Shown: piece by piece, positions 6,301-63,182 of the stretch
Numbering within the stretch: the first letter of the stretch is position 1
Layout: every line of letters begins with the position of its first letter
NCBI RefSeq assembly: GCF_037042905.1
Contig: NC_087255.1
Coordinates: 32,922,001-32,986,000, forward strand
Source: Lytechinus pictus
Taxonomy: Eukaryota
Direction of reading: 5' to 3'
Length of the DNA stretch: 64,000 nucleotides
The notes under the pieces: model-generated
Told to the model about the DNA's origin: nothing
The model's input: only the letters and a program-made list of their open reading frames with translations
Database searches by the model: none
Translations under genes and position numbers: made by a program

Positions 6301-7129
6301 AAACCAACCGTCCGTCAATATCATAGCCTGAAAACGGATTCCGAAAATGATTATGAAACTTTCAGTTTTAGATCTTGAATACTAGATAACGTTACGTCAT
6401 GAATGGGAGATTTGTAGTATTTTACAGAGGAAGGCAGATGGACTACGATTAAAAAATAGCTAAATACAAAATGCAATGAACTAATTTAGGAAGAAAAAAT
6501 GATAGGGCACTGAAAAGGAATAGCCTTTGAAAGAGGGAGGGAGAAGGTATAAGCATGGAAAATAAAAAAATCAGCTGCCAGTGGTAGCTCCATAGGCCTA
6601 CCTTTATCTCAACTTAGATCATCTCATCATTTTTTAAATTTTAATCATATCTATGTGGTAGCAACAACTATCTCATATTGCCTTCGACTTTCATTTAATG
6701 AAAATGACAAACTTTTGAGACAGAATTAAATTCAAAGCCCGAATCAAAGCTAGATCAATTGCTGTCATATAGGTGGATCATAGTTATTTAAATAAGGATT
6801 GTATCTCTGTTTATCTTTGAAAGATCTACGGAGTCCTCGATGCCTTCCTCGGCCCTCTCATGTCCACCACGAGCCCGGGGTTGGACAGTGACGTCGACGC
6901 TAACGAGGATTACGTCATCGAACACGACCACGCCCTTCGAAACGGCACCACCCTTGACAAGCCTATGCAGATGAACGGCCTGCGACACAGCCAGCGGGAA
7001 CGTGACGGGTACATGGATCGAGGAATGGAGGTAAATGGAAGCTTGTATGGCCCTAGGGATGCTAACGCTATCAGTGGCAAACGGGTTCCTGACGGGAAAA
7101 GCAGGGGTGTAGATCATTACGTTTACTAA
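242..7129 (+). CDS. Phospholipid phosphatase-related (PLPPR/PRG-like, PAP2 fold) pseudo-phosphatase, 7 coding exons, ~364 aa (short/read-through isoform)
   Basis: Exons 242-339, 860-1010, 3377-3509, 3961-4132, 5027-5084, 6027-6203, 6824-7129. All introns are GT-AG, phases are consistent, and the total is 1095 nt. The product has multiple TM helices, PLPPR-like LRRTVRFTG, and degenerate PAP2 motifs C1 (GQLILSHPAPDF), C2 (SFPSLY) and C3 (QQIAAHRAHWSDV). The acceptor at 69-70 implies a 5'UTR exon upstream of the window. Confidence 0.88.
860..1010 (+). CDS. PLPPR-like coding exon 2
   Basis: TAG acceptor ending at 859, YFMQWQ...VLPPIV, donor GTAAGT at 1011. Confidence 0.88.
1797..1947. repeat. 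Near-perfect inverted repeat (67-bp arms, 17-nt loop)
   Basis: 1797-1863 versus 1881-1947, 2 mismatches. Confidence 0.92.
3058..3372. repeat. CT-rich low-complexity tract
   Basis: Degenerate (CT)n directly upstream of the exon 3 acceptor. Confidence 0.85.
3377..3509 (+). CDS. PLPPR-like coding exon 3
   Basis: Long pyrimidine tract plus TAG; VLFGEAAVG...LRRTVRFT; donor GTAAGG at 3510. Confidence 0.9.
3961..4132 (+). CDS. PLPPR-like coding exon 4 (degenerate C1 motif)
   Basis: CAG acceptor; IFLLGAFITWILTRAGQLILSHPAPDFF; donor GTATAT at 4133. Confidence 0.9.
4138..4545. repeat. (GT)n / (GAT,GGT)n low-complexity tract
   Basis: Simple repeats. Confidence 0.8.
5027..5084 (+). CDS. PLPPR-like coding exon 5 (degenerate C2 motif)
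   Basis: TTGCAG acceptor; QSFPSLYASLSTYASIYVA; donor GTGAGT at 5085. Confidence 0.9.
5595..5874. mobile_element. MITE with CACTG termini
   Basis: TA|CACTGTAAAAAA...TTCTAACAGTG|TA. Confidence 0.65.
6027..6203 (+). CDS. PLPPR-like coding exon 6 (degenerate C3 motif)
   Basis: CAG acceptor; ...HWSDVIGGWILGAVVAFYL; donor GTAGGT at 6204. Confidence 0.92.
6824..7129 (+). CDS. PLPPR-like coding exon 7, cytoplasmic tail (internal donor at 7031)
   Basis: AAG acceptor in frame with ORF 6860-7129; GC-rich coding-like composition; stop TAA ending 7129. Confidence 0.82.
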   Translation: MYGVLDAFLGPLMSTTSPGLDSDVDANEDYVIEHDHALRNGTTLDKPMQMNGLRHSQRERDGYMDRGMEVNGSLYGPRDANAISGKRVPDGKSRGVDHYVY

Positions 7130-9483
7130 CAAAAACATTGAGCATAAAACCATCTTGCTTTACTGTCCTAATTCTGGCATAGAGGGCGCCGAGTTTCACT
7201 CGCTTCGGACAAGCATTCAGATATTGGAACTTGACACTCCCCCTTTTCTGCTTATTAAAAAAAAATGATTAGCACATTGGAATATTTAAATTAAAAAAGA
7301 TCCTCTTTGATTCATTAAATGATTTCCACACCTGAACGCTCAAAGTCGAATATAATTTTAAAGTAACAGTGTTTCTTTTTATATACAGAATGACCAAATC
7401 TGAATTCTCGATTCTCACTTTGCATATAGCATTGTATTTTGTTGAATGTTGTCGAGTTTGTAATTTTAATGTATTCAACCAAGGAATGGTCCAATGTTTT
7501 TCCTCAGTGTTTCTTATTCAAGAAATTGAATCTGTCCGATGTGTATTAGAAGCCGGTCGCAATAATATTGTTTTCTAGGAACACTTTTCATGCAATGGAA
7601 AATGTTTATAATCTCATGGTAACACAAATAGAAATGTCTTTAATTATTATATATCATCATGTTTTCAAAAATCTAACTACACATCATCATCGGAAAAATG
7701 GTGTATATACTACTAAATGAATGCTATATAATTCTCATATCAAAATAATTTATTAATAATTTATTTTTGATTCATATTGTGCAATTTCTAATTCTTTAAA
7801 ACAAAATGACAAAAGTTCGCTTTATCAACGAGAAAACGAAAATTTGTCAAAAGAGCTTCCAAATCGGTTTATTCACATTATTTTCCTTGCTTCATATCCA
7901 AAAAAAGGGAAATGAGTAATTAATGAAAACAGTACTTTATTTTGCAAGAGAATGACAATATATATATTTTCATTGATTGAATAATTCCAAATATTGTTTC
8001 TTTATTGTTAACTGAAAATTCTTGTTTTTATTAGAATGAATCATAAACAAAATGTGATGAAGAAGCTATGATCCCGTCTATTTGTTATATATATTGGGGA
8101 AAGGACTTGTTTGTTTGTTTTCATTTCCATATAAAAAGCATAAATAAAATACATGAAAATCAAGAAAACATTTACGATGGAGGATAGCCCATTTCAGTGA
8201 TATTTACTATCAATGTTCTTCCATGGGGTCCTAATTAAAAAACACTGATTTCGTTCAATAACTAAACATGTATTCGACCAAAATACCTTCTTAAATGAAT
8301 AAATTACTGTTTACCCTATATTTTATCGTGATATATTGTTAAAAATTGGTGTCTTCCGAAATGTTCCATTAATGTTTTTATATTATCTGCTATGGGTTGT
8401 CTGGAAATATTAACTGCGGTCGACATGGTCGATCTTATGTCTTCTTTGTTATTGTCTTTTAATATCTTTGCTGTATGCTTCTAAATTGCTTTTGTGTGAT
8501 CATTTCTGCCCTGTAAAATTCTTCAATTGGGAGTGGTGACTTAAAGATGTTCGTAAAGTAACTCAAAACATAAGTACGAATGGCAAGCTTGTGATGTGTC
8601 TACGGCATCAATTTAAATCACATCATGTAAAAGTTGACGAATGGTTCGTTCAAGAAACTTACGTTTAATTCAAAATTTAGTGTATTTGTTTTTTATATTT
8701 GTTCAATTAGTACTTGACTTTCTTGAACATCTCATACGCTTGGATTCGGGACTTACGCTTAATGCAGAAAATAATATGCCCTAACAACTTACATACTCTC
8801 TTTAATAAAAGCCCTGAGGTCATTAATTTTGTGGTACTTCATATTCCAGTCGGTCGTTAATTTATTCATAAATTTATGTACAGCTTTAATGAAACCGCCC
8901 CATGGTTAGATAATGCACTTGTCAATATATTTTGTATATGATTTTTTTTCATTTAATTATCTCTGTTGCATGACTGTAAATTTTCTTTCTTTTGTAAAAC
9001 ACCCTTTACTTTTTCTTTTCCTTGCTAATTGTATACACGCTTAAAATGATTGGCAAAAATAACCAATTGTGTTGCTGAATTGTGCCCGACTCCCAAAACT
9101 GTCCAAATAAATCAAATCATTGGTTCGAATCTACCTTATTTTCATTAATTTTGAGCATTATTTTTGGATGGATACAATTTATATTTACGAACAGATTGGT
9201 TATTTGAAACATTCCTTTTTAAAAGTGTGTTGTTTATGTTTCAAAATGTTTATATCGCAAATATTATATATTTTTATATCACTGCAAAAGATTGAAAGAT
9301 CTCAAACACAAAGAAATAATTTTGATTTATTTTTAGCATAATGATAGTCCAAGGAAGGCTAATGCGAAATTTTGGATGCAATGTAGCTATAACACTTCCA
9401 TAGATTATTATATCAGTTTGTATATCTTGTTGCTTATGAATATTTCTGTTTGTACCTAACTGCTTCCATTGTGATTAAATCAG

Positions 9484-9493
9484 CTGAATTCAG
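9484..9493 (+). CDS. Candidate 10-nt microexon (CTGAATTCAG) of the PLPPR-like gene
   Basis: Branch-like CTAAC 9456-9460, TGC 9461-9463, CAG acceptor 9481-9483, CAG|GTAAAA donor. It converts phase 0 (donor 7031) to the phase 1 needed by exon 10450. Confidence 0.55.
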
Positions 9494-10449
9494 GTAAAAT
9501 TTGACGTGTCATTTTCTACCTTTTGGTGGTGTTCTTTGATTTATTTCATTTAATTTGTCGGGTCTATAATATTCTGTAATTTTCTACAGTTTGCAGTTTG
9601 CATGATTTGATTTGTGTCTATCAAGCTACTTTAGTAACTGTTGTTATTCATATTCCATTCTAAATCGTCTATCGAACACATTAATTTGTATTGATATTAT
9701 CTAAAGATGGAGGTTTTTGTTATATAAATCTAATAATCTACCTTCAAAAGTTGAAACTGCTTTTTTTAACTTTGAAAATACAAGAAGAAGAAGAAAATAA
9801 GCCTTTATGATTGTAGCTTCGATATAAACCAACACGTGACTTTTATCGCATAGGCTAAATCTCGATGAAAATATTATTTGAATATAAGGTTGTTGGTTTA
9901 CTACTCTACGAGGTCTATATGGAAATCGGCATAATGAATTGATGGTCTTCATGTAAGGGTGTGTGTGTGTGTGTGTGTGTGGGAGGGGGGGGTGGGGTGA
10001 GAGTAGGTGATTAAAATGATTTGCTAGTGTGTGCTGGGGAATGTGCTTGTGTGTGGAATTATTTGAGTGGTAGAAGAGCACAGAACGCAGGCCTATTTAA
10101 AAAAAGAATCTACGAAACAAAAGATGAATGTGGTCGAGGTAAAATGGAAACTGTTCACTGATATAGGTTGAGTGTACATATTCGTACATTCATTCACGAG
10201 CTTACATGATTGTCAATGATCGCCTTTAAAAAGGTACTTTTCATTCAACAATATTATAGGTCAAATGATCATACCTACCTTTAATTTAAGATGTTGAGTA
10301 AACGAAAACGATCTGCGGTATCCAGACCTGTTGGACGGTGACTGTGATCACTAATTTCATATCTAACGCTGATAACACCTTGATCAATCACTAACTCTAT
10401 ACTGGTTTGTTTTATTCATTTCTTTCCATGCACCCCATTCTAACATCAG

Positions 10450-10706
10450 CATCTACAGTAACCGGGGCAACGGGGAGGACTTCTTCTAACCAATCACAAT
10501 CCTCCTACCACATACCCCGACCGCTCACGAAAAAGGGCGTCTACTCGTACCTCTACGACGGTCGTAGGGGGCGTCCCGTTTTCAAACCCTTACGGACGCC
10601 ACCGTCGCCGCCGCCCGTAATTCCACGAACCCGAAACGCCCACCCTGATCGGCCCATACAAGTCGTCAATACTGTGAACAGGACTGCTAATTCGGAATAC
10701 TTCTGA
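10450..10706 (+). CDS. Candidate alternative terminal coding exon of the PLPPR-like gene (Pro-rich tail ending SEYF)
   Basis: GC/CpG-rich open frame inside AT-rich DNA; AG-free pyrimidine tract from 10391 to the CAG at 10447-10449; stop TGA ending 10706; AATAAA at ~10720. Confidence 0.68.
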
Positions 10707-13700
10707 AACATATCGTCATAATAAAGACTTTTCGACATCTTTAACGGAAATATACCTCACTGGAAAATACATAATTATTTCACTGAGAGACCTGCAGACC
10801 TGGGCCTGCAGAATGATTGTTAAACTTCTGCACAATATCTGCGACTTTTAAGCCACTTTTCTATTTGGAAATTTAAGCAAAATACACTTCTGTGGAATGT
10901 GGGCGATCGGCTTTTTTATGCAGTGTTACTGTGTGAGCTTTCATCGTCATCTTGTCACCTTTTTATATATCAATTTATTTTCCATGTTATCAATACTAAT
11001 ACTTTTCATTCGCCGTGGGATTCAATATTATTGTGCTATAGGCCCTATAAGTGGGTGAACGTGAACTGTTTATCATTTTCGGTCTTTATTATATATTACT
11101 CTTTAAATGTATTTTATATTAAAAAGATTTAATGATGGTAAGTGCCAACTTATAGTTTCCTATATTAGCCTATGATATAATCTGCCAATAATCTATAAGT
11201 AAGATGAAATATTTGGATTTTATAAAATGAGATCAGTTTATTTTACTATTGAAGACATTTGCAAACAGACTCTCCAAAATTATAATGAGTCTATATTGTA
11301 ATTGAACGGATTAATTTATGTGCATCCTTGGGGACCTTATACTAGTATTTCATAATGCAAAAAAAAAAAAAAAACATTAACGGGAATAGATATTTGTCCG
11401 TATGCTTAAACATATACATTCTCTTTTTTTCCAGCATTTAATTCATATAAAATACATGCTCTCTTGCTACGTACTCTCGTGATTTCACCGTAAGAATACG
11501 GTTAAACAGCATTGGATCACACCAATTATTTTACATCGGTGTAAGTTCAACAGTGTTATCTCAACACCTTTGGTGATAACTTTTCAACGCTTTGGTGTTA
11601 TATTCAATCTCTATAGGGTGTATATTTTAACATCTCAATGTGTGGTCCTCTCGGGACAACTTGTGTGTAAATCTTAACATCTTATTTCATTGTATAATGA
11701 GATCTTAAACCGTAAGTTTTGATAACACTTTATATCTTACTTCCCCAGAGTCACCGCTGAGACGCCCTCAACGCAGTTACGCTCAAGAGTACATGGATCA
11801 GTACAACCTTTGAAGCTAAAAATAGCGATTATAATTATAAAACATTATCTAGTCCCCTTCTCTTTTCTGAAATGCATGAATAAATCAAAATGCGAAAAAG
11901 TTCAATCTTCATGAATTAGAGTAAATCAATTATTTCATATAAAGTCGAACTGTATTTTCAGTAAATTTGATGTCATTTCATGATCACTCTTCTGGTGATC
12001 ATTGAGATAACTCCCACACGAGTAAACAAAAAAAAAAAATCACATTTCACTCATAGTTTACTCTAATTACACCCCTTAGAGAGAGAAAAACTATATATCT
12101 ATCTATCTATCCTGGCAAAGGGTTATTTTAAGAGGCAGTTACTTAAGGCAATGCAAAACTAAAATTGGATATTACATAATCGAATAGCTTGTAACATGAG
12201 GACCATAAGTTATTTAGATTAGATATCCCGTTGATCAATAATTATCATTAAGAAAACAAAAATAGGATTTAAGATCCATTATAGGTTATTAGAAGGTTCA
12301 ATTTGGTGTATGTCTATGGTGTATCAACATGAAGACATATATATTCGTTCATCTATTAATGATAATGCTTACCTTTTGGCCAAATATTATAATTTCATGT
12401 ATTTGTTTTTTTTCAACAACGGTTGTGCTTGACCTACACGTAAATCAATTCCAGCACAGTTGGTAAAAATATAAACGTGTAAACGGCGGTGTCTTAACGT
12501 AGTAACAATGTTTTATATAACAAAAAGATGTCTTTCAAATGAAACAAGTGGAATCTAGATTCATATTAATTTATCGATATATAAAACAAATCGATATAAA
12601 AAATATTCGCCAAGAATGTAGGCTACGTCTAATATTAAATGTCCGGAAGTTGGTGGTTCATTGTTAAGACTTGTATTGTGTTTCATAATAGCAAATACTA
12701 TATTTCCAAGTGCTTTCAACTAACTCCATTTCTATGAAAAACAAACACATTGTTAGCTTATGTGAGTAAGATTGTATATTTATCAACCAATTTCAAATGC
12801 ACGGGATGTATTCTCGTCGATAGTGTATGAAAGGTAAATGCTTATTAATACAATTCATGTAAAGTATATGTATGGATTAAAAACTGTGTTACGTATATTC
12901 ATAAGTGACCCGGAAGTGACCTTATAATCGTAAAACCATATTTTGTGAATGATTCTGTTTTAGAACCAGTGCTGAGGTTTATTTTTTTAAATCAAAGTAG
13001 GCCTACAAGCCATTGCCAATTTGCTGCCACAGCTTTTGTAATGATATTGACTGAACGCTCGGTATCAATTGAGAATTATTTTTATATAAGCTAATATTTT
13101 TGTGTCCAATCAAAGATTTACAATAAATTTAATCATATAATCATCAAATAATGTTAAAGTAAAAACATAAATACATCTAAACATGCTGTATGTGCAAGTG
13201 TGAGCACTGGCATGACTGGTGTAAAGGATAACAAGTTTGTGGAGCTAATGTTTTGAATTTGCTCATTAAACTGTTAGAAATTGTACACTGCATCAAGAAA
13301 TAGGCCTACATCAGTGTCTACATACTGTACATGTAGCTATATTATAAAGGAAACCCATTTTAACCCATCTTAAAGTTGATATCACTTAAACGGCACTTTA
13401 AGTCACATACGGGTGTTTAGAATAAAATTTAAATATTAGCTTATATCTTGCATCATTATCCCGACATATTAGGGTAAATATGGATGCACTAAAATGAGAT
13501 TTATAGGTTTATATTAGTGAATTTGTATGGCGTGGAAAAAGTGGGACAAGGCGGGGTGGGGGTGGGGGCTACCCAGCCAGGGAAACTTGATATTATGAGA
13601 TAGAGGAGCAAGAGATTAGTATCAATTATTATACGCTCTCAGAATTTTTTAAAACCAAATCCAGAGTTGGTTAAGTTATCAACCAACCAACGGTTGATAA

Positions 13701-14569
13701 AAAAAAAATCCCAATACATTTTGCATACAGCTTTGTTTACAACCGTTTATATGTTCATACTTGTAGGTTGATTAAACCTTTCTGAGAATGTAAGTATGCC
13801 TGCATTTATTCCATTTTGAAAATGTGAAAACGTAGCTTTTGTACTTTTTGTAATGTTCTTGTACAAATTGATTTGTTGTGATATTCGTATTATCAGTGGT
13901 GCATTTGTAATTTTGTTGAGACTTCATTAGTACATACAATAATATTTTGTACAGTTAATGGTTTAAAATACCGATCTTTTTAAATTGATAACATAAAAAT
14001 AAATCATTTTGCCAAATACCGCAAATATATCATCACAATTGTTAAATCAATTTGATGCTTCAAAAAGAAACATCTCCGTTATAACAGAGGTAATAGAATA
14101 TATTAGTGTGCTTGACGATAGTGGTACGTACAAATACCCATACTACATTCAAGAAAGAACTATGTTATCAGAAAAATATAAGAGGAAATATCAGAGGAAT
14201 ATCATGTCCATGATATTCCACTCAATGTGATATGTTTTCCCATTTAATGTTTCTCAAATTATATTTTGTTTGTGTTCATATTGGTGGGATAGATATATTA
14301 GCATTTGTATGTTAAGTGGGATATATATTTTTATCTCAGTCTTTCAGTTATCAATAGCCATGGTGATTTATCATATAAATTAAGAATGAAATTAAACCAC
14401 ATTATGTAAAAAGTAAAGTCAATGTGTTGTTCATATTGGAATTACATTTTGGAATTGTCATGTAAGAGGGGGGGGGGGGGGTGGGGGAGGGGGTGGAGAG
14501 GGAGGGGAGATAGAGCAAAGAAATAAGGAAAATATAGAGAGAGGGGAATTCAAATGCAGAGATTCTCTT

Positions 14570-15667
14570 TCTTTACTTCCCCTCTCTCCCCCACCTTCAA
14601 CATTTCTCTTCCCCTCTCTCCTCCACCTTCCGCATCTCTCTTCCCCTCTCTCCCCAACCTTTCAAATTTCTCTTCCCCTCTATCTCCTCCACCTTCCGCA
14701 TCTCTCTCCCCCACTTTCCACATTTCTCTTCCCCTCTCTCCCCCACCTTCCGCATCTCTTTCTCTCTCTCCCCCACTTTCCACATTTCTCTTCCCCTCTC
14801 TCTCCCCCTTCCACATTTCTCTTCCCCTCTCTTCCCCACCTTCCACATTTATCTTCCCCTTTCTCCACCACCTTCTTCATCTCCCTTTCCCTCTCTCCCC
14901 CACCTTCCACATTTCTCTTCCCCTCTCTCCCCCACCTTCCACATTTCTCTTCCCCTCTCTCCACCACCTTCCACATCTCTCTCCCCCACCTTCCACCTTT
15001 CTCTTCCCCTCTCTCCCCCACCTTCCGCATCTCTTTCTCTCTCTCCCCCACTTTCCACATTTCTCTTCCCCTCTCTCTCCCCCTTCCACATTTCTCTTCC
15101 CCACCTTCCACATTTATCTTCCCCTTTCTCCACCACCTTCTGCATCTCCCTTTCCCTCTCTCCCCCACCTTCCACATTTCTCTTCCCCTCTCTCCACCAC
15201 CTTCTGCATCTCCCTTTCCCTCTCTCCCCCACCTTCCACATTTCTCTTCCCCTCTCTCCCCCACCTTCCACCTTTCTCTTCCCCTCTCTCCACCACCTTC
15301 TGCATCTCTCTTCCCCACTTTCCACATTTCTCTTCCCCTCTCTCTCCCCCTTCCACATTTCTCTTCCCCACCTTCCACATTTATCTTCCCCTTTCTCCAC
15401 CACCTTCTGCATCTCCCTTTCCCTCTCTCCCCCACCTTCCACATTTCTCTTCCCCTCTCTCCACCACCTTCTGCATCTCCCTTTCCCTCTCTCCCCCACC
15501 TTCCACATTTCTCTTCCCCTCTCTCCCCCACCTTCCACCTTTCTCTTCCCCTCTCTCCACCACCTTCTGCATCTCTCTTCCCCACCTTCCTCATTTCTCT
15601 TCCCCTCTCTCCCCCACCTTCCACATTTCACATCCCCTCTCTCCCCCACCTTTCACATCTCTTCCCC
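14570..15667. repeat. Polypyrimidine minisatellite (~31-bp CCCCACCTTCCACATTTCTCTTCCCCTCTCT)
   Basis: Tandem C/T-rich units with higher-order duplication; explains the spurious ORFs in several frames on both strands. Confidence 0.95.
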
Positions 15668-18375
15668 GCCCAACCATCTGTCTTTGCCCCTCTACCTCCT
15701 ATATACTCATCATCTCCAGCAGGTTTGATAAGACAATCTCCAAATGATATTTTCTTCACAACTGATGTTATACTCCTTTTATCAAAATAATGCAAAAACC
15801 ATATTCATACAGATATAGAATGCTTTTTATTAAAGCTTCAATCACATTTTCATAACGGATAACATACATGTACATGAATATCTAAATGGACGAGACAATT
15901 TATAGGGAAGAATTTGTGTCATTTCTCGCAATTTACACATTTATATTGCAATTTCCCTTTCTCAGCTTATTCATTACCTACTACAGAGAAACAATGGCTA
16001 AAGTAAAAATTACCTTGTTACTTTGTTCGCCTATCAATAAATCTATGCAAGTCTCCTTATGATAAAATAATTACTCAATTTGAATATACAATAAAATCAT
16101 GTCATTGAGAAACTTAAAGAATTCATATTGGAGTTTAAATGTAAATGGGCTGCAACACCATGACGATTTAGCCATCATATTCCAACATACTGTACTCGTG
16201 ACCTCCTATACGCACATTTACTATCAAGAATCCCATACTTTATATCAAGAATTGTGATTTGTTACCAGCCAAAATTCTAAGAATTAAATTCTTTACAAGA
16301 AGATTCACTTGTGTTAAGACAAGGCAATTCTTGATATAAAGAAAAGGGATGAACATCTTGACATAGCCTAGGTATATCGGCTCAGGTGTATCAGCACTTT
16401 AAATGACAAAATTTATACATGATTTTGTCAACATTCATCAAATACACTTATAAATTAATAGAAATAAGGAAGTTAACTTGGACAATGGCAATTGTTATTT
16501 GCCACATTCCTAGCCTTACATTGTAATTTGGTGATCCATTATCTTTTTTTTTATTCAAAAACTATTTCACTACCCAAAATAATCTTACTTATGGAATGAA
16601 AACTTTAACATTTGTATAAAAAAAATTACAGAAAGCATAGGAAATAAATGAATAATCCATCTTTCTCAGTTCCAACCAGGCAGTGGTATGTCGATTTTTT
16701 TGTGGAAAGAGTACTCCCGCCTGAAATCAGAATGAATTGCATTAACAGAATAAAATTTTGAAAGCAAAATACTGAATATTAAATTCAAACCAGATTAAAA
16801 AAATGGTTATTTTCATGTTTGTATTATTGTGGTTAACATATTATGAGTGTGAAATGAGTGAGGTGATTTTTTTCATTCCTGTTTTTGCATGATATTATTT
16901 TTCCACTATGATTACAAACGAATAGTAGGTAAATAGTTCTGTCCAAATACTCATAACCTAAAATCCATTACATGCGATACCACATCACATTCATCATAAT
17001 TGATAACCCGTCAATCCATTGACAAGTATACACAAAATGTATCCTAACCAAATCATAATGCAAAAAACCTAATGTCTCTCTAATTCAAATACAAGTTACA
17101 TATTTTAATCCTTATCATTCCAAGATATAAATATCTATTACATAAACATCCAACGAAACATGAAATATAATCTTATATAAACTGTCTACCTTTCCCGAAC
17201 AACAAATCCATTGGCATTAGCAAAAAGTCATCACGATAGGGATTTGTGACAAACACCAAATGCATTACTCATATATTTCTTGTGTTGAGTACTGAGTTAC
17301 CTCACATATGTACACTAATTTTTTATGACTATACAACAATCACCTGTATCTCAACTATTTTGGCTAAATTTCATATACGCTATTAAAGGGTTCTAAGGAT
17401 CGTATCAAGAAACATGCTATTTCTATAAACAAATGAAAGGTTATGCCACATTATACATGGAATGATTTGTTATTACACAAGCAAGAATGAAAGATTACCT
17501 CTCCTGAGAGAGTAGCTCGAACAACTAAAAATCATCACGTCCAAGTTTATAAAAGGGCTTCAAAACCAGGGTTTGAAAATGATTAATGCAAATTTTCTGC
17601 ATTAATTATGATTAATTTTCTGCACACATTGAGAAAGGGTACAATAACGTATAGGCGTTTTTGTCAAATGGGACTGAAGTTAGGTTTGTTGCTATGGTGT
17701 GAGCATAAAACAGCTCATAATTTAGAATTAGTGTGTCCACTCTCTATTTAAATCAACTGAAATACAAAGTAGGCTCAAACTATAGTGACATGAAGCTTGA
17801 ACCTAAAAACCTCTTAATACAATTAGCACGATCTATTAGACATTTGCCCAATGCACATGGTGATATTAGCATAAACCACGGTCTTAAACCAAAGCTTCAA
17901 AATCAATTATTATGAATGATGGGCCAAAGAGTCAAATATGATGTAGTATGGTGGCAGAGGTTAAAGATCGAGCTGAATTCTTTGGATATACTATTGGTGC
18001 ATCATTAAATCACATATTTGAGAACTTGTAAGCGTTTTTGGATTTCACAAAAAATGGCTGTGTTACCTTACTTATAAGAAACACCTGGATTCAGAATGGA
18101 CAGCTAAATGTTTGAACAAAAAAAAAAAAAAATCAAGAAGGCTGTCCAACAACTTTTCCTTCTTATCCTCTTCAATATATGTTATTAAAAAAAATCAGAA
18201 ATGATTGTGATATATTTTAAACCCAAATGCACCGTGAAATTAGCCAATTATATTTTATGTCAGAAACCATTTACAATGTTGATGAAAATAAGGATGATCA
18301 CATAGCTGAGCCTTGAGATAATGAAATATCATTTTAGTATAAATAAGATGATTTGCTGCAATCTCTGTTTGTTGT

Positions 18376-62314: not shown

Positions 62315-63182
62315 CAGGGGCGTCGATCCTTTTTTAAGATTGGGGGGGGGGGGGCAAAATCATGAATCAACTTTCCAAAGGCGCTCGATNNNNNNNNNNN
62401 NNNNNNNNNNNNNNNNNNNNNNNNNNNNNNNNNNNNNNNNNNNNNNNNNNNNNNNNNNNNNNNNNNNNNNNNNNNNNNNNNNNNNNNNNNNNNNNNNNNN
62501 NNNNNNNNNNNNNNNNNATAGAGACACATATCTCACCAACAAATTAATGCGAGCGCGAAGCGTGAGCTGAAATTTTTTAGTGTACTGACCTGAAAACAGG
62601 AAAAAGACCTGTGCCTATTTAGGACTGTTTGTAGAAACTCATAAGGAGGATACATATCTCACTACACAGATAATGCGAGTGCCGAGGGTGAGCTGAAATT
62701 TCTTTACATTCTGACCAGAAAGCTTGATATTTGGTACCAATTTTGATATTTCGATCTGGAAAAAAATGACAGTTTTATGGACGTTTTTAACAAAGAACAA
62801 GATTATATCCAGCAAAAGATTATCGCAAATCGAAGCGGGAGTTCTTTTGAGGTTTAGAACTGAAAACGGGACATTCTATTCACCTATTTAATCATGAAAA
62901 GTATGGGGTTTTGCTACAGAAATGATGCGAGCGCGAAGCGCGAGCTGAAAATTTTTATATTCCAATCTGAAAAGCGGACAATTTGGGCAGGATTTTAAAT
63001 GAAGAACGAGTTGGGTAGCTCAATCTCGCTTGTTGATTTCTCTGTAACATTACCATCTTATTTTATTTTTGCACATGCGGAATTATTTGGGGGGGGGGGC
63101 AAATCGATATGTTTGCCCCCCCCAAATATTTTCATTGGTGGGGCGATCGCCCACCTGCCCCCCCCCAGGATCGACGCCTCTG
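62315..63182. mobile_element. hAT-type non-autonomous element spanning the assembly gap
   Basis: TIR CAGGGGCGTCGATCC/GGATCGACGCCTCTG with 8-bp TSD TATATACA on both sides. Confidence 0.82.
62390..62517. other. Assembly gap (128 N)
   Basis: Run of N. Confidence 1.

Follow-up and report, generated by a model that had tools for sequence, protein, structure and literature searches.

A conserved 10-nt microexon predicted to set the reading frame of alternative C-terminal tails in a sea urchin PLPPR1/5-like gene

The C-terminal tail of a PLPPR1/5-like protein in the sea urchin Lytechinus pictus appears to be chosen in part by a microexon that shifts the reading frame. The 64,000 nucleotides (nt) of L. 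pictus DNA that we analyzed (contig NC_087255.1, positions 32,922,001 to 32,986,000; here called the window, to whose forward strand coordinates refer) include the 3' end of this gene, a member of the PAP2 superfamily. An earlier note made from the window had proposed that a 10-nt cassette at 9484-9493 (CTGAATTCAG) could switch the frame and choose among three tails. On comparative evidence that we consider decisive, we conclude that this cassette is a genuine, conserved and very old frame-shifting microexon, with a predicted role in choosing between C-terminal tails. The signals named in the proposal (a donor at 7031, the cassette, CTAAC and TGC motifs, an acceptor at 10450 or 10459 and an open reading frame (ORF) entered in phase 1) are all present, and its three predicted products were recomputed exactly. 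Its count of tails needed revision: those three exist as readings, but a further terminal exon at 11749-11813 had been missed, so that five tails are possible. With good confidence we favor a model in which a choice of 3' end is combined with frame selection by a microexon whose length is one more than a multiple of three (3n+1).

The microexon encodes Leu-Asn-Ser plus one nucleotide and lies in the context tcag/CTGAATTCAG/gtaaaa (slashes mark splice sites), with a CAG/GTAAAA donor that fits seven of nine consensus positions. Upstream of it, CTAAC (9456-9460) and TGC (9461-9463) are followed by GCTTCCATTGTGATTAAATCAG, and this intronic element (9456-9483, forward strand), near-invariant in four urchins, likely comprises a branch point and a splicing-regulatory region with a weak pyrimidine tract. 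Besides the TGC, the element GCTTCCATTGTGATTAAATC is conserved at the microexon. Taken singly, the L. pictus sequence provides weak evidence for the cassette, because the same 3.4-kb intron contains 59 cassettes that are stop-free and would fix the frame for the exon at 10450 (from 333 AG..GT cassettes of 3-51 nt, 101 of which are 3n+1 long). A crude splice score over these 59 ranks 9484-9493 first by a narrow margin.

Comparison with other echinoderms carries the case. In Lytechinus variegatus the microexon and its flanks are identical to those of L. pictus, and in Strongylocentrotus purpuratus and Diadema setosum the microexon is ATGAATTCAG, with A as its first base where Lytechinus has C. 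In the alignment of these four urchins, GCTTCC(A/T)TTGTGA(T/A)TAAA..TCAG upstream and GTAAA downstream of the microexon are invariant. BLAST of positions 6700-12300 against S. purpuratus returned three intronic blocks, the largest of which (9395-9525) surrounds the microexon, and against Diadema the sole non-repeat intronic match was 9456-9498, which covers the 10-mer and about 28 nt upstream. Three sea stars (Asterias rubens, Acanthaster and Patiria miniata) have a microexon of 13 nt at the equivalent position, so that the lengths in four urchins and three sea stars are 10, 10, 10, 10, 13, 13 and 13 nt, all of them 3n+1. Because the length change between the classes is exactly 3 nt and leaves the 3n+1 property intact, the comparison argues that the frame shift is the function under selection. 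Conservation of the 10-mer and of the 10450-10706 reading frame, which the earlier note had proposed as a check, thus holds for both in related urchins.

Of the blocks matched in S. purpuratus, the two smaller ones, at 7683-7718 (AATGGTGTATATACTACTAAAT) and 8454-8500 (TTCTAAATTGCTTTTGTGTGAT), have no exon-like boundaries and were rejected as hidden exons for want of an upstream AG; they may be splicing-regulatory. The second of them has TTGTGTGAT-like sequence in common with the element upstream of the microexon. Within the intron, at 9958-10006, a G-rich run comes after a (GT)n microsatellite, and a repeat of this kind gave rise to spurious Diadema matches.

Transcripts of this gene can end in three places after the residues ..DRGME, which close coding exon 7 (6824-7030, forward strand; IYGVLDAF...DRGME; a 100% match to the RefSeq L. 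pictus isoforms). The exon ends in GGA ATG GAG and is followed from 7031 by a phase-0 donor, GAG/GTAAAT, that is kept in L. variegatus, S. purpuratus, Diadema and sea stars. If this donor is unused, translation continues into an extension of exon 7 (7031-7129, forward strand; a composite terminal exon present in RefSeq X1) that encodes VNGSLYGPRDANAISGKRVPDGKSRGVDHYVY and yields ..VNGS..VDHYVY with a stop at 7127-7129; polyA-like ATTAAA hexamers lie downstream at 7254, 7290 and 7314. Between L. pictus and S. purpuratus the ratio of non-synonymous to synonymous substitution rates (dN/dS) is 0.085 in the extension; the ratio for exon 7 itself is 0.20. The extension has in-frame indels in S. purpuratus and Diadema and on a Tara scaffold, and we conclude from comparison of these sequences that the extension is coding. 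Sea stars have no such extension.

The second 3' end is terminal exon A (10450-10706, forward strand), which is supported by RefSeq L. pictus X3, by its dN/dS and by sea-star homology. Its acceptor reads atcag/CATCTACAG/TAACC at 10450, with an alternative at 10459, and AATAAA follows at 10720. With the microexon skipped, exon A is read in frame 0 and gives HLQ and a stop; with the microexon included it is read in frame +1 and gives an 85-residue conserved tail, ASTVTG...YDGRRGR...PPSPPP...SEYF, that ends at TGA 10704-10706. By computation, the acceptor at 10459 would shorten this tail by three residues or, without the microexon, leave E and a stop. In the SEYF frame, 32 synonymous differences separate L. 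pictus from S. purpuratus, against 8 that are non-synonymous (dN/dS 0.06, below the value for exon 7), and the ratio against Diadema is 0.09. This is also the sole frame that is open in all four urchins, the other two containing 2-4 stops. The pattern of substitution points to strong purifying selection on the exon A tail in the SEYF frame. When the tail is aligned with those of sea stars, YDGxRGR and the terminal YF do not vary, and a single pairwise BLASTP comparison with a sea-star tail gave E = 0.006; from the alignment we conclude that the exon A tail and the long tails of sea stars are homologous.

Terminal exon B (11749-11813, forward strand) lies downstream of exon A and was located by tblastn of L. 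variegatus X2; RefSeq L. pictus X2 ends in its SHR. It begins ccccag/AGT CAC CGC TGA and is followed by AATAAA at 11879. Frame 0 gives SHR with a stop at 11758-11760, and frame +1 is an intact ORF that gives ESPLRRPQRSYAQEYMDQYNL with a stop at 11811-11813. Both frames are conserved as far as sea stars (SRR or NRR before a stop, and ESSLKRP...). A regular-expression search for exon B found none in Diadema and found it in A. rubens with a diverged shifted frame. At that A. rubens locus (L006:18516) the shifted frame reads ESTLIGESGALV before its stop, the SRR stop of frame 0 is retained, and no isoform joining the microexon to exon B is annotated.

RefSeq models already contain most of the predicted outcomes. 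Two of the products named in the earlier note are annotated in L. pictus: the read-through ..VNGS..VDHYVY is X1, and ..GMEHLQ, from direct joining of 7030 to 10450, is X3; X2 ends in SHR, from exon B. Where L. pictus X2 has SHR, L. variegatus X2 (XP_041475036.1 and XP_041475019.1) has LNS-ESPLRRPQRSYTQEYMDQYNL, and S. purpuratus X2 (XP_030851841.1 and XP_011681480.2) has MNS-ESTMRRQYRGY; S. purpuratus X3 ends in SQR. LNS and MNS are the codons of the microexon (CTG or ATG, AAT and TCA, plus G), and the residues that follow are those of the SHR or SQR exon read one base later, so that L. variegatus X2 reads ..ME-LNS-ESPLRR.., the microexon and then shifted exon B. A Logan contig from another urchin (L001) is a real spliced transcript that joins exon 7 directly to exon B, ending ..GMEMHR, and its shifted frame reads DASLRRHYRDY before a stop. 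For L. pictus, the five computed tails end in ..VDHYVY, HLQ, SHR, ..QYNL (microexon and exon B, LNSESPLRRPQRSYAQEYMDQYNL) and ..SEYF (microexon and exon A); the predicted junction peptides are ..GMELNSASTVTG.. and ..GMELNSESPLR.., and the predicted C-terminus of the longest form is ..TANSEYF. In the computational RefSeq models, L. variegatus, S. purpuratus and sea stars have both forms that include the microexon and forms that skip it.

L. variegatus has two complete and near-identical isoform sets (XP_041475017-21 and XP_041475035-38) on one chromosome record (L004), which differ, for example, in SSTGPGMD and SATSPGMD; they reflect a recent duplication or else a haplotype that was not collapsed.

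In sea stars the microexon is joined to exon A. A long tail that ends in ..YDG(I/V)RGR..TNYF is present in four species, and the form that skips the microexon and uses exon B ends in SRR or NRR in every species compared. A. rubens X3 (XP_033637039.1) consists of exon 7, a 13-nt microexon (ctcag/AACACTTATTCAG/gtaaca) and exon A (gaag/CCGTCCAG..; NTYS/AVQIPS..TNYF), and X1 of the same species enters the same exon A with the microexon skipped, out of frame (PSRFLLHS..). In Acanthaster planci (cacag/AACCCCTATGCAG/gtaaaa), X1 (XP_022087320.1) joins the microexon to exon A and X3 skips it; the joined form is also annotated as X2 (XP_071800314.1) in A. amurensis. The P. miniata microexon (cacag/ACCCATAACTCAG/gtaaaa) appears in X2 (XP_038049536.1), which reads E-THNS-ESSLKRP... 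A second and longer 3n+1 cassette lies between exon 7 and the microexon in sea stars, 52 nt long at L003:~13006-13057 (WKKKWLANSVPNDKNTS plus one nucleotide) and 55 nt long at L007:~12334-12388 (WTKANWSSNSAPSGKRKP plus one nucleotide). With this cassette, too, exon B is read in the conserved frame (P. miniata X1 and Acanthaster X2), and no urchin counterpart was seen.

In the mechanism that we propose, transcripts would make a three-way choice of 3' end after ..DRGME, among the exon-7 extension, exon A and exon B, and the microexon, lying between exon 7 and exons A and B, would act as a frame selector because its length is 3n+1. Skipping it would bring exons A and B to a stop after three codons (HLQ or SHR), leaving an essentially tail-less protein, whereas its inclusion would yield an 88-residue tail with exon A (LNS-ASTVTG..YDGRRGR..PPSPPP..SEYF) or a 24-residue tail with exon B (LNS-ESPLRR..QYNL). 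Nonsense-mediated decay would not be expected for any of these products under the exon-junction rule, because every stop lies in a terminal exon. The junctions of exon 7 with A, of exon 7 with B and of exon 7 with the microexon and B are present in Lytechinus and Strongylocentrotus RefSeq models, and that of exon 7 with the microexon and A in sea-star models. That urchins also use the last of these we infer from three things: the frame is under selection, none of the other phase-1 donors is a good one, and sea stars set a precedent.

Several observations weigh against this account. All three RefSeq isoforms of L. pictus are without the microexon, and the RefSeq evidence on isoforms consists of computational gene models. 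The third product of the earlier note, with microexon and exon A, has its frame under purifying selection and its counterpart in sea stars, but across the collections searched no urchin transcript or gene model supports the junction from 9493 to 10450. Likewise, no urchin protein or transcript in these collections joins the microexon to exon A, the urchin clusters contained no member of about 420 residues, the exon A peptide had no match among proteins of 46-147 residues, and a search with the S. purpuratus exon A ORF (90-285 residues) matched only an unspliced genomic ORF on a Logan contig. Exon 7 and its extension also contain further phase-1 GT sites (6888, 7002, 7074 and 7107), though all are weak, fitting three to six of nine consensus positions. 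Finally, P. miniata X4 (..E-NPGTAVVQ..; L003:15200-15300) enters the exon A frame without the microexon and through a non-AG acceptor: ahead of the canonical acceptor GCAG/TTGTCC its reading runs colinearly with the genomic sequence, and it would need tttact/AACCCC. The 13-nt microexon joined to the canonical acceptor gives the identical frame (THNS-VVQAQ..). Either X4 is wrong or there is another route into the exon A frame, and it is probably a model that compensates for a missed microexon.

Some of these observations would fit an urchin microexon that is real and pairs only with exon B, its sole annotated urchin partner (L. variegatus X2 and S. purpuratus X2), with the exon A frame reached by a weak phase-1 donor such as 7107 (G/GTGTAG) or 7002 (C/GTGACG), or by an unseen cassette. 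No urchin product of microexon and exon A turned up in the databases, and phase-1 GT sites are present, 7107 having been named as a possible donor in the earlier note. However, the poor consensus match of these sites speaks against their use, and a donor at 7002 or 6888 would remove the conserved ..Y(M/I)DR(G/N)ME block. In addition, sea stars join the microexon to exon A though they are without the exon-7 extension, and the intron contains no further conserved AG..GT block, the two shared with S. purpuratus lacking an upstream AG. We regard restriction to exon B as unlikely. Far less probable still is that the AG and GT around the cassette are paired by chance and that the exon A ORF is a non-coding 3' untranslated region conserved at the RNA level, even though 59 frame-fixing cassettes arise by chance in this intron and the L. 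pictus RefSeq annotation makes exon A untranslated after HLQ. The cassette is conserved across the full depth of the euechinoids, and two urchins as well as sea stars have RefSeq models that use it. In exon A, synonymous substitutions outnumber the others 4:1 in just one frame, a pattern that constraint at the RNA level does not predict; as far as comparison can go, a chance origin is refuted.

The identity of the gene is supported by several searches. Pfam PF01569 (PAP2) matched L. pictus X1 at 33.4 bits (cut-off 27.2), and no domain was matched in a Pfam scan of exon 7 alone or of exon A alone. The best named homologues of the product are PLPPR1/5-like RefSeq proteins, and the exons in the window match RefSeq L. 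pictus isoform X2 at 100%. Used as the query of an exhaustive HMMER search, the exon-7 ORF recovered a 100-residue ORF on a Tara scaffold that retains the entire read-through tail, as well as a 354-residue full-length protein from the 1307-nt Logan contig L001, a spliced transcript. With this protein as query, PLPPR1/5-like RefSeq proteins were found in S. purpuratus, L. variegatus, Diadema, several sea stars, a brittle star and hemichordates, and the cluster lists from the homologue search include L. pictus isoforms X1-X3. An ATP-synt_C neighbor and the exon order are common to four other echinoderm loci (L004-L007). By eye, SFPSLY occupies what we take to be the S-G-H position of the LPP lipid phosphate phosphatase motif. 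A literature search on PLPPR in sea urchin and on PLPPR5 splice variants found no papers. Elsewhere in the window, positions 14001-16000 have a GC content of 0.447 and a GC skew of -0.62 against a background GC content of about 0.35, and a run of 128 N at 62390-62517 is an assembly gap or a mask.

The frame selector might in addition be under neuronal control. Members of the PLPPR family are neuronal in vertebrates. We considered whether inclusion of the microexon is neuron-specific and driven by the eMIC domain of urchin Srrm234 through the upstream UGC, an addition to the model that is possible and, on balance, doubtful. The layout resembles that of SRRM3/4-dependent exons (bioRxiv 10.1101/2024.09.17.613571), with CTAAC about 24 nt from the AG, UGC between them, a weak tract of about 18 nt and a good 5' splice site. 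On the other hand, by our own estimate a TGC is expected in about a quarter of AT-rich stretches of about 30 nt, and most neural microexons have a length divisible by three, which this exon does not. Moreover, the TGC found at -23..-21 in L. pictus, L. variegatus and S. purpuratus is displaced to -32..-30 in Diadema and is not conserved in sea stars, none of the three having a TGC within 45 nt upstream of the microexon. More tentative again, and somewhat less probable, is the broader proposal that the microexon is an ancestral echinoderm frame selector that predates the split between urchins and sea stars, is included in neurons only under Srrm234/eMIC control and adds the YDGxRGR...YF tail.

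Several known systems share parts of this arrangement. In the RefSeq orthologues of urchins and P. miniata, as predicted for L. pictus, the same microexon (10 nt, or 13 nt in the sea star) is joined to exon B in the shifted frame, and skipping ends the protein at SHR, SQR or NRR; the differences are that these are automatic gene models and that the L. pictus annotation is without the microexon. The sea-star long-tail isoforms likewise consist of exon 7, microexon and exon A, with ..YDGxRGR..NYF, and have exon A out of frame when the microexon is skipped. They differ in the 13-nt microexon, in a shorter tail without the urchin PPSPPP, and in a skipped reading of 24 residues versus three. With the neural microexons of vertebrates and insects that depend on SRRM3/4 or Srrm234, the L. 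pictus exon has in common a very short cassette, a weak 3' splice-site context, a UGC between branch point and AG (in three urchins) and deep conservation that includes the flanking intron; it differs in that its length is not a multiple of three and that it would swap whole tails rather than insert 1-9 residues. Precedent for a microexon that is not a multiple of three exists in the 4-nt exon of MPC1, which is constitutive (PMC9929638). As there, the length of the microexon sets the downstream frame, here joined to a choice of 3' end as in composite and alternative terminal exons, but the L. pictus microexon would be optional, with both outcomes productive because the stops lie in terminal exons.

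The microexon was already present in automatic RefSeq models of sister species, and its joining to exon A in sea-star models. New here are its recognition in L. pictus, its proposed dual action on two terminal exons, the retention of 3n+1 length across classes and a predicted urchin isoform of about 420 residues. No urchin annotation holds this isoform, though its tail is the best-conserved C-terminal part of the protein.

Our findings describe a deeply conserved case in which the role of a microexon would be to change the reading frame and not to insert residues. Terminal exons A and B each have one frame that stops at once and another that encodes a conserved tail, so that the microexon would simply switch the cytoplasmic tail of a PLPPR-type protein on or off, and in vertebrates the tail of this family carries signaling interactions. 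The microexon is also a test case for control by echinoderm Srrm234 of microexons whose length is not a multiple of three. If neuronal control of this kind proved true, it would be a frame-shifting member of an ancient bilaterian neural microexon program, acting on two dual-frame terminal exons at once, and in urchins the tail that it adds would also carry a proline-rich stretch resembling an SH3 ligand.

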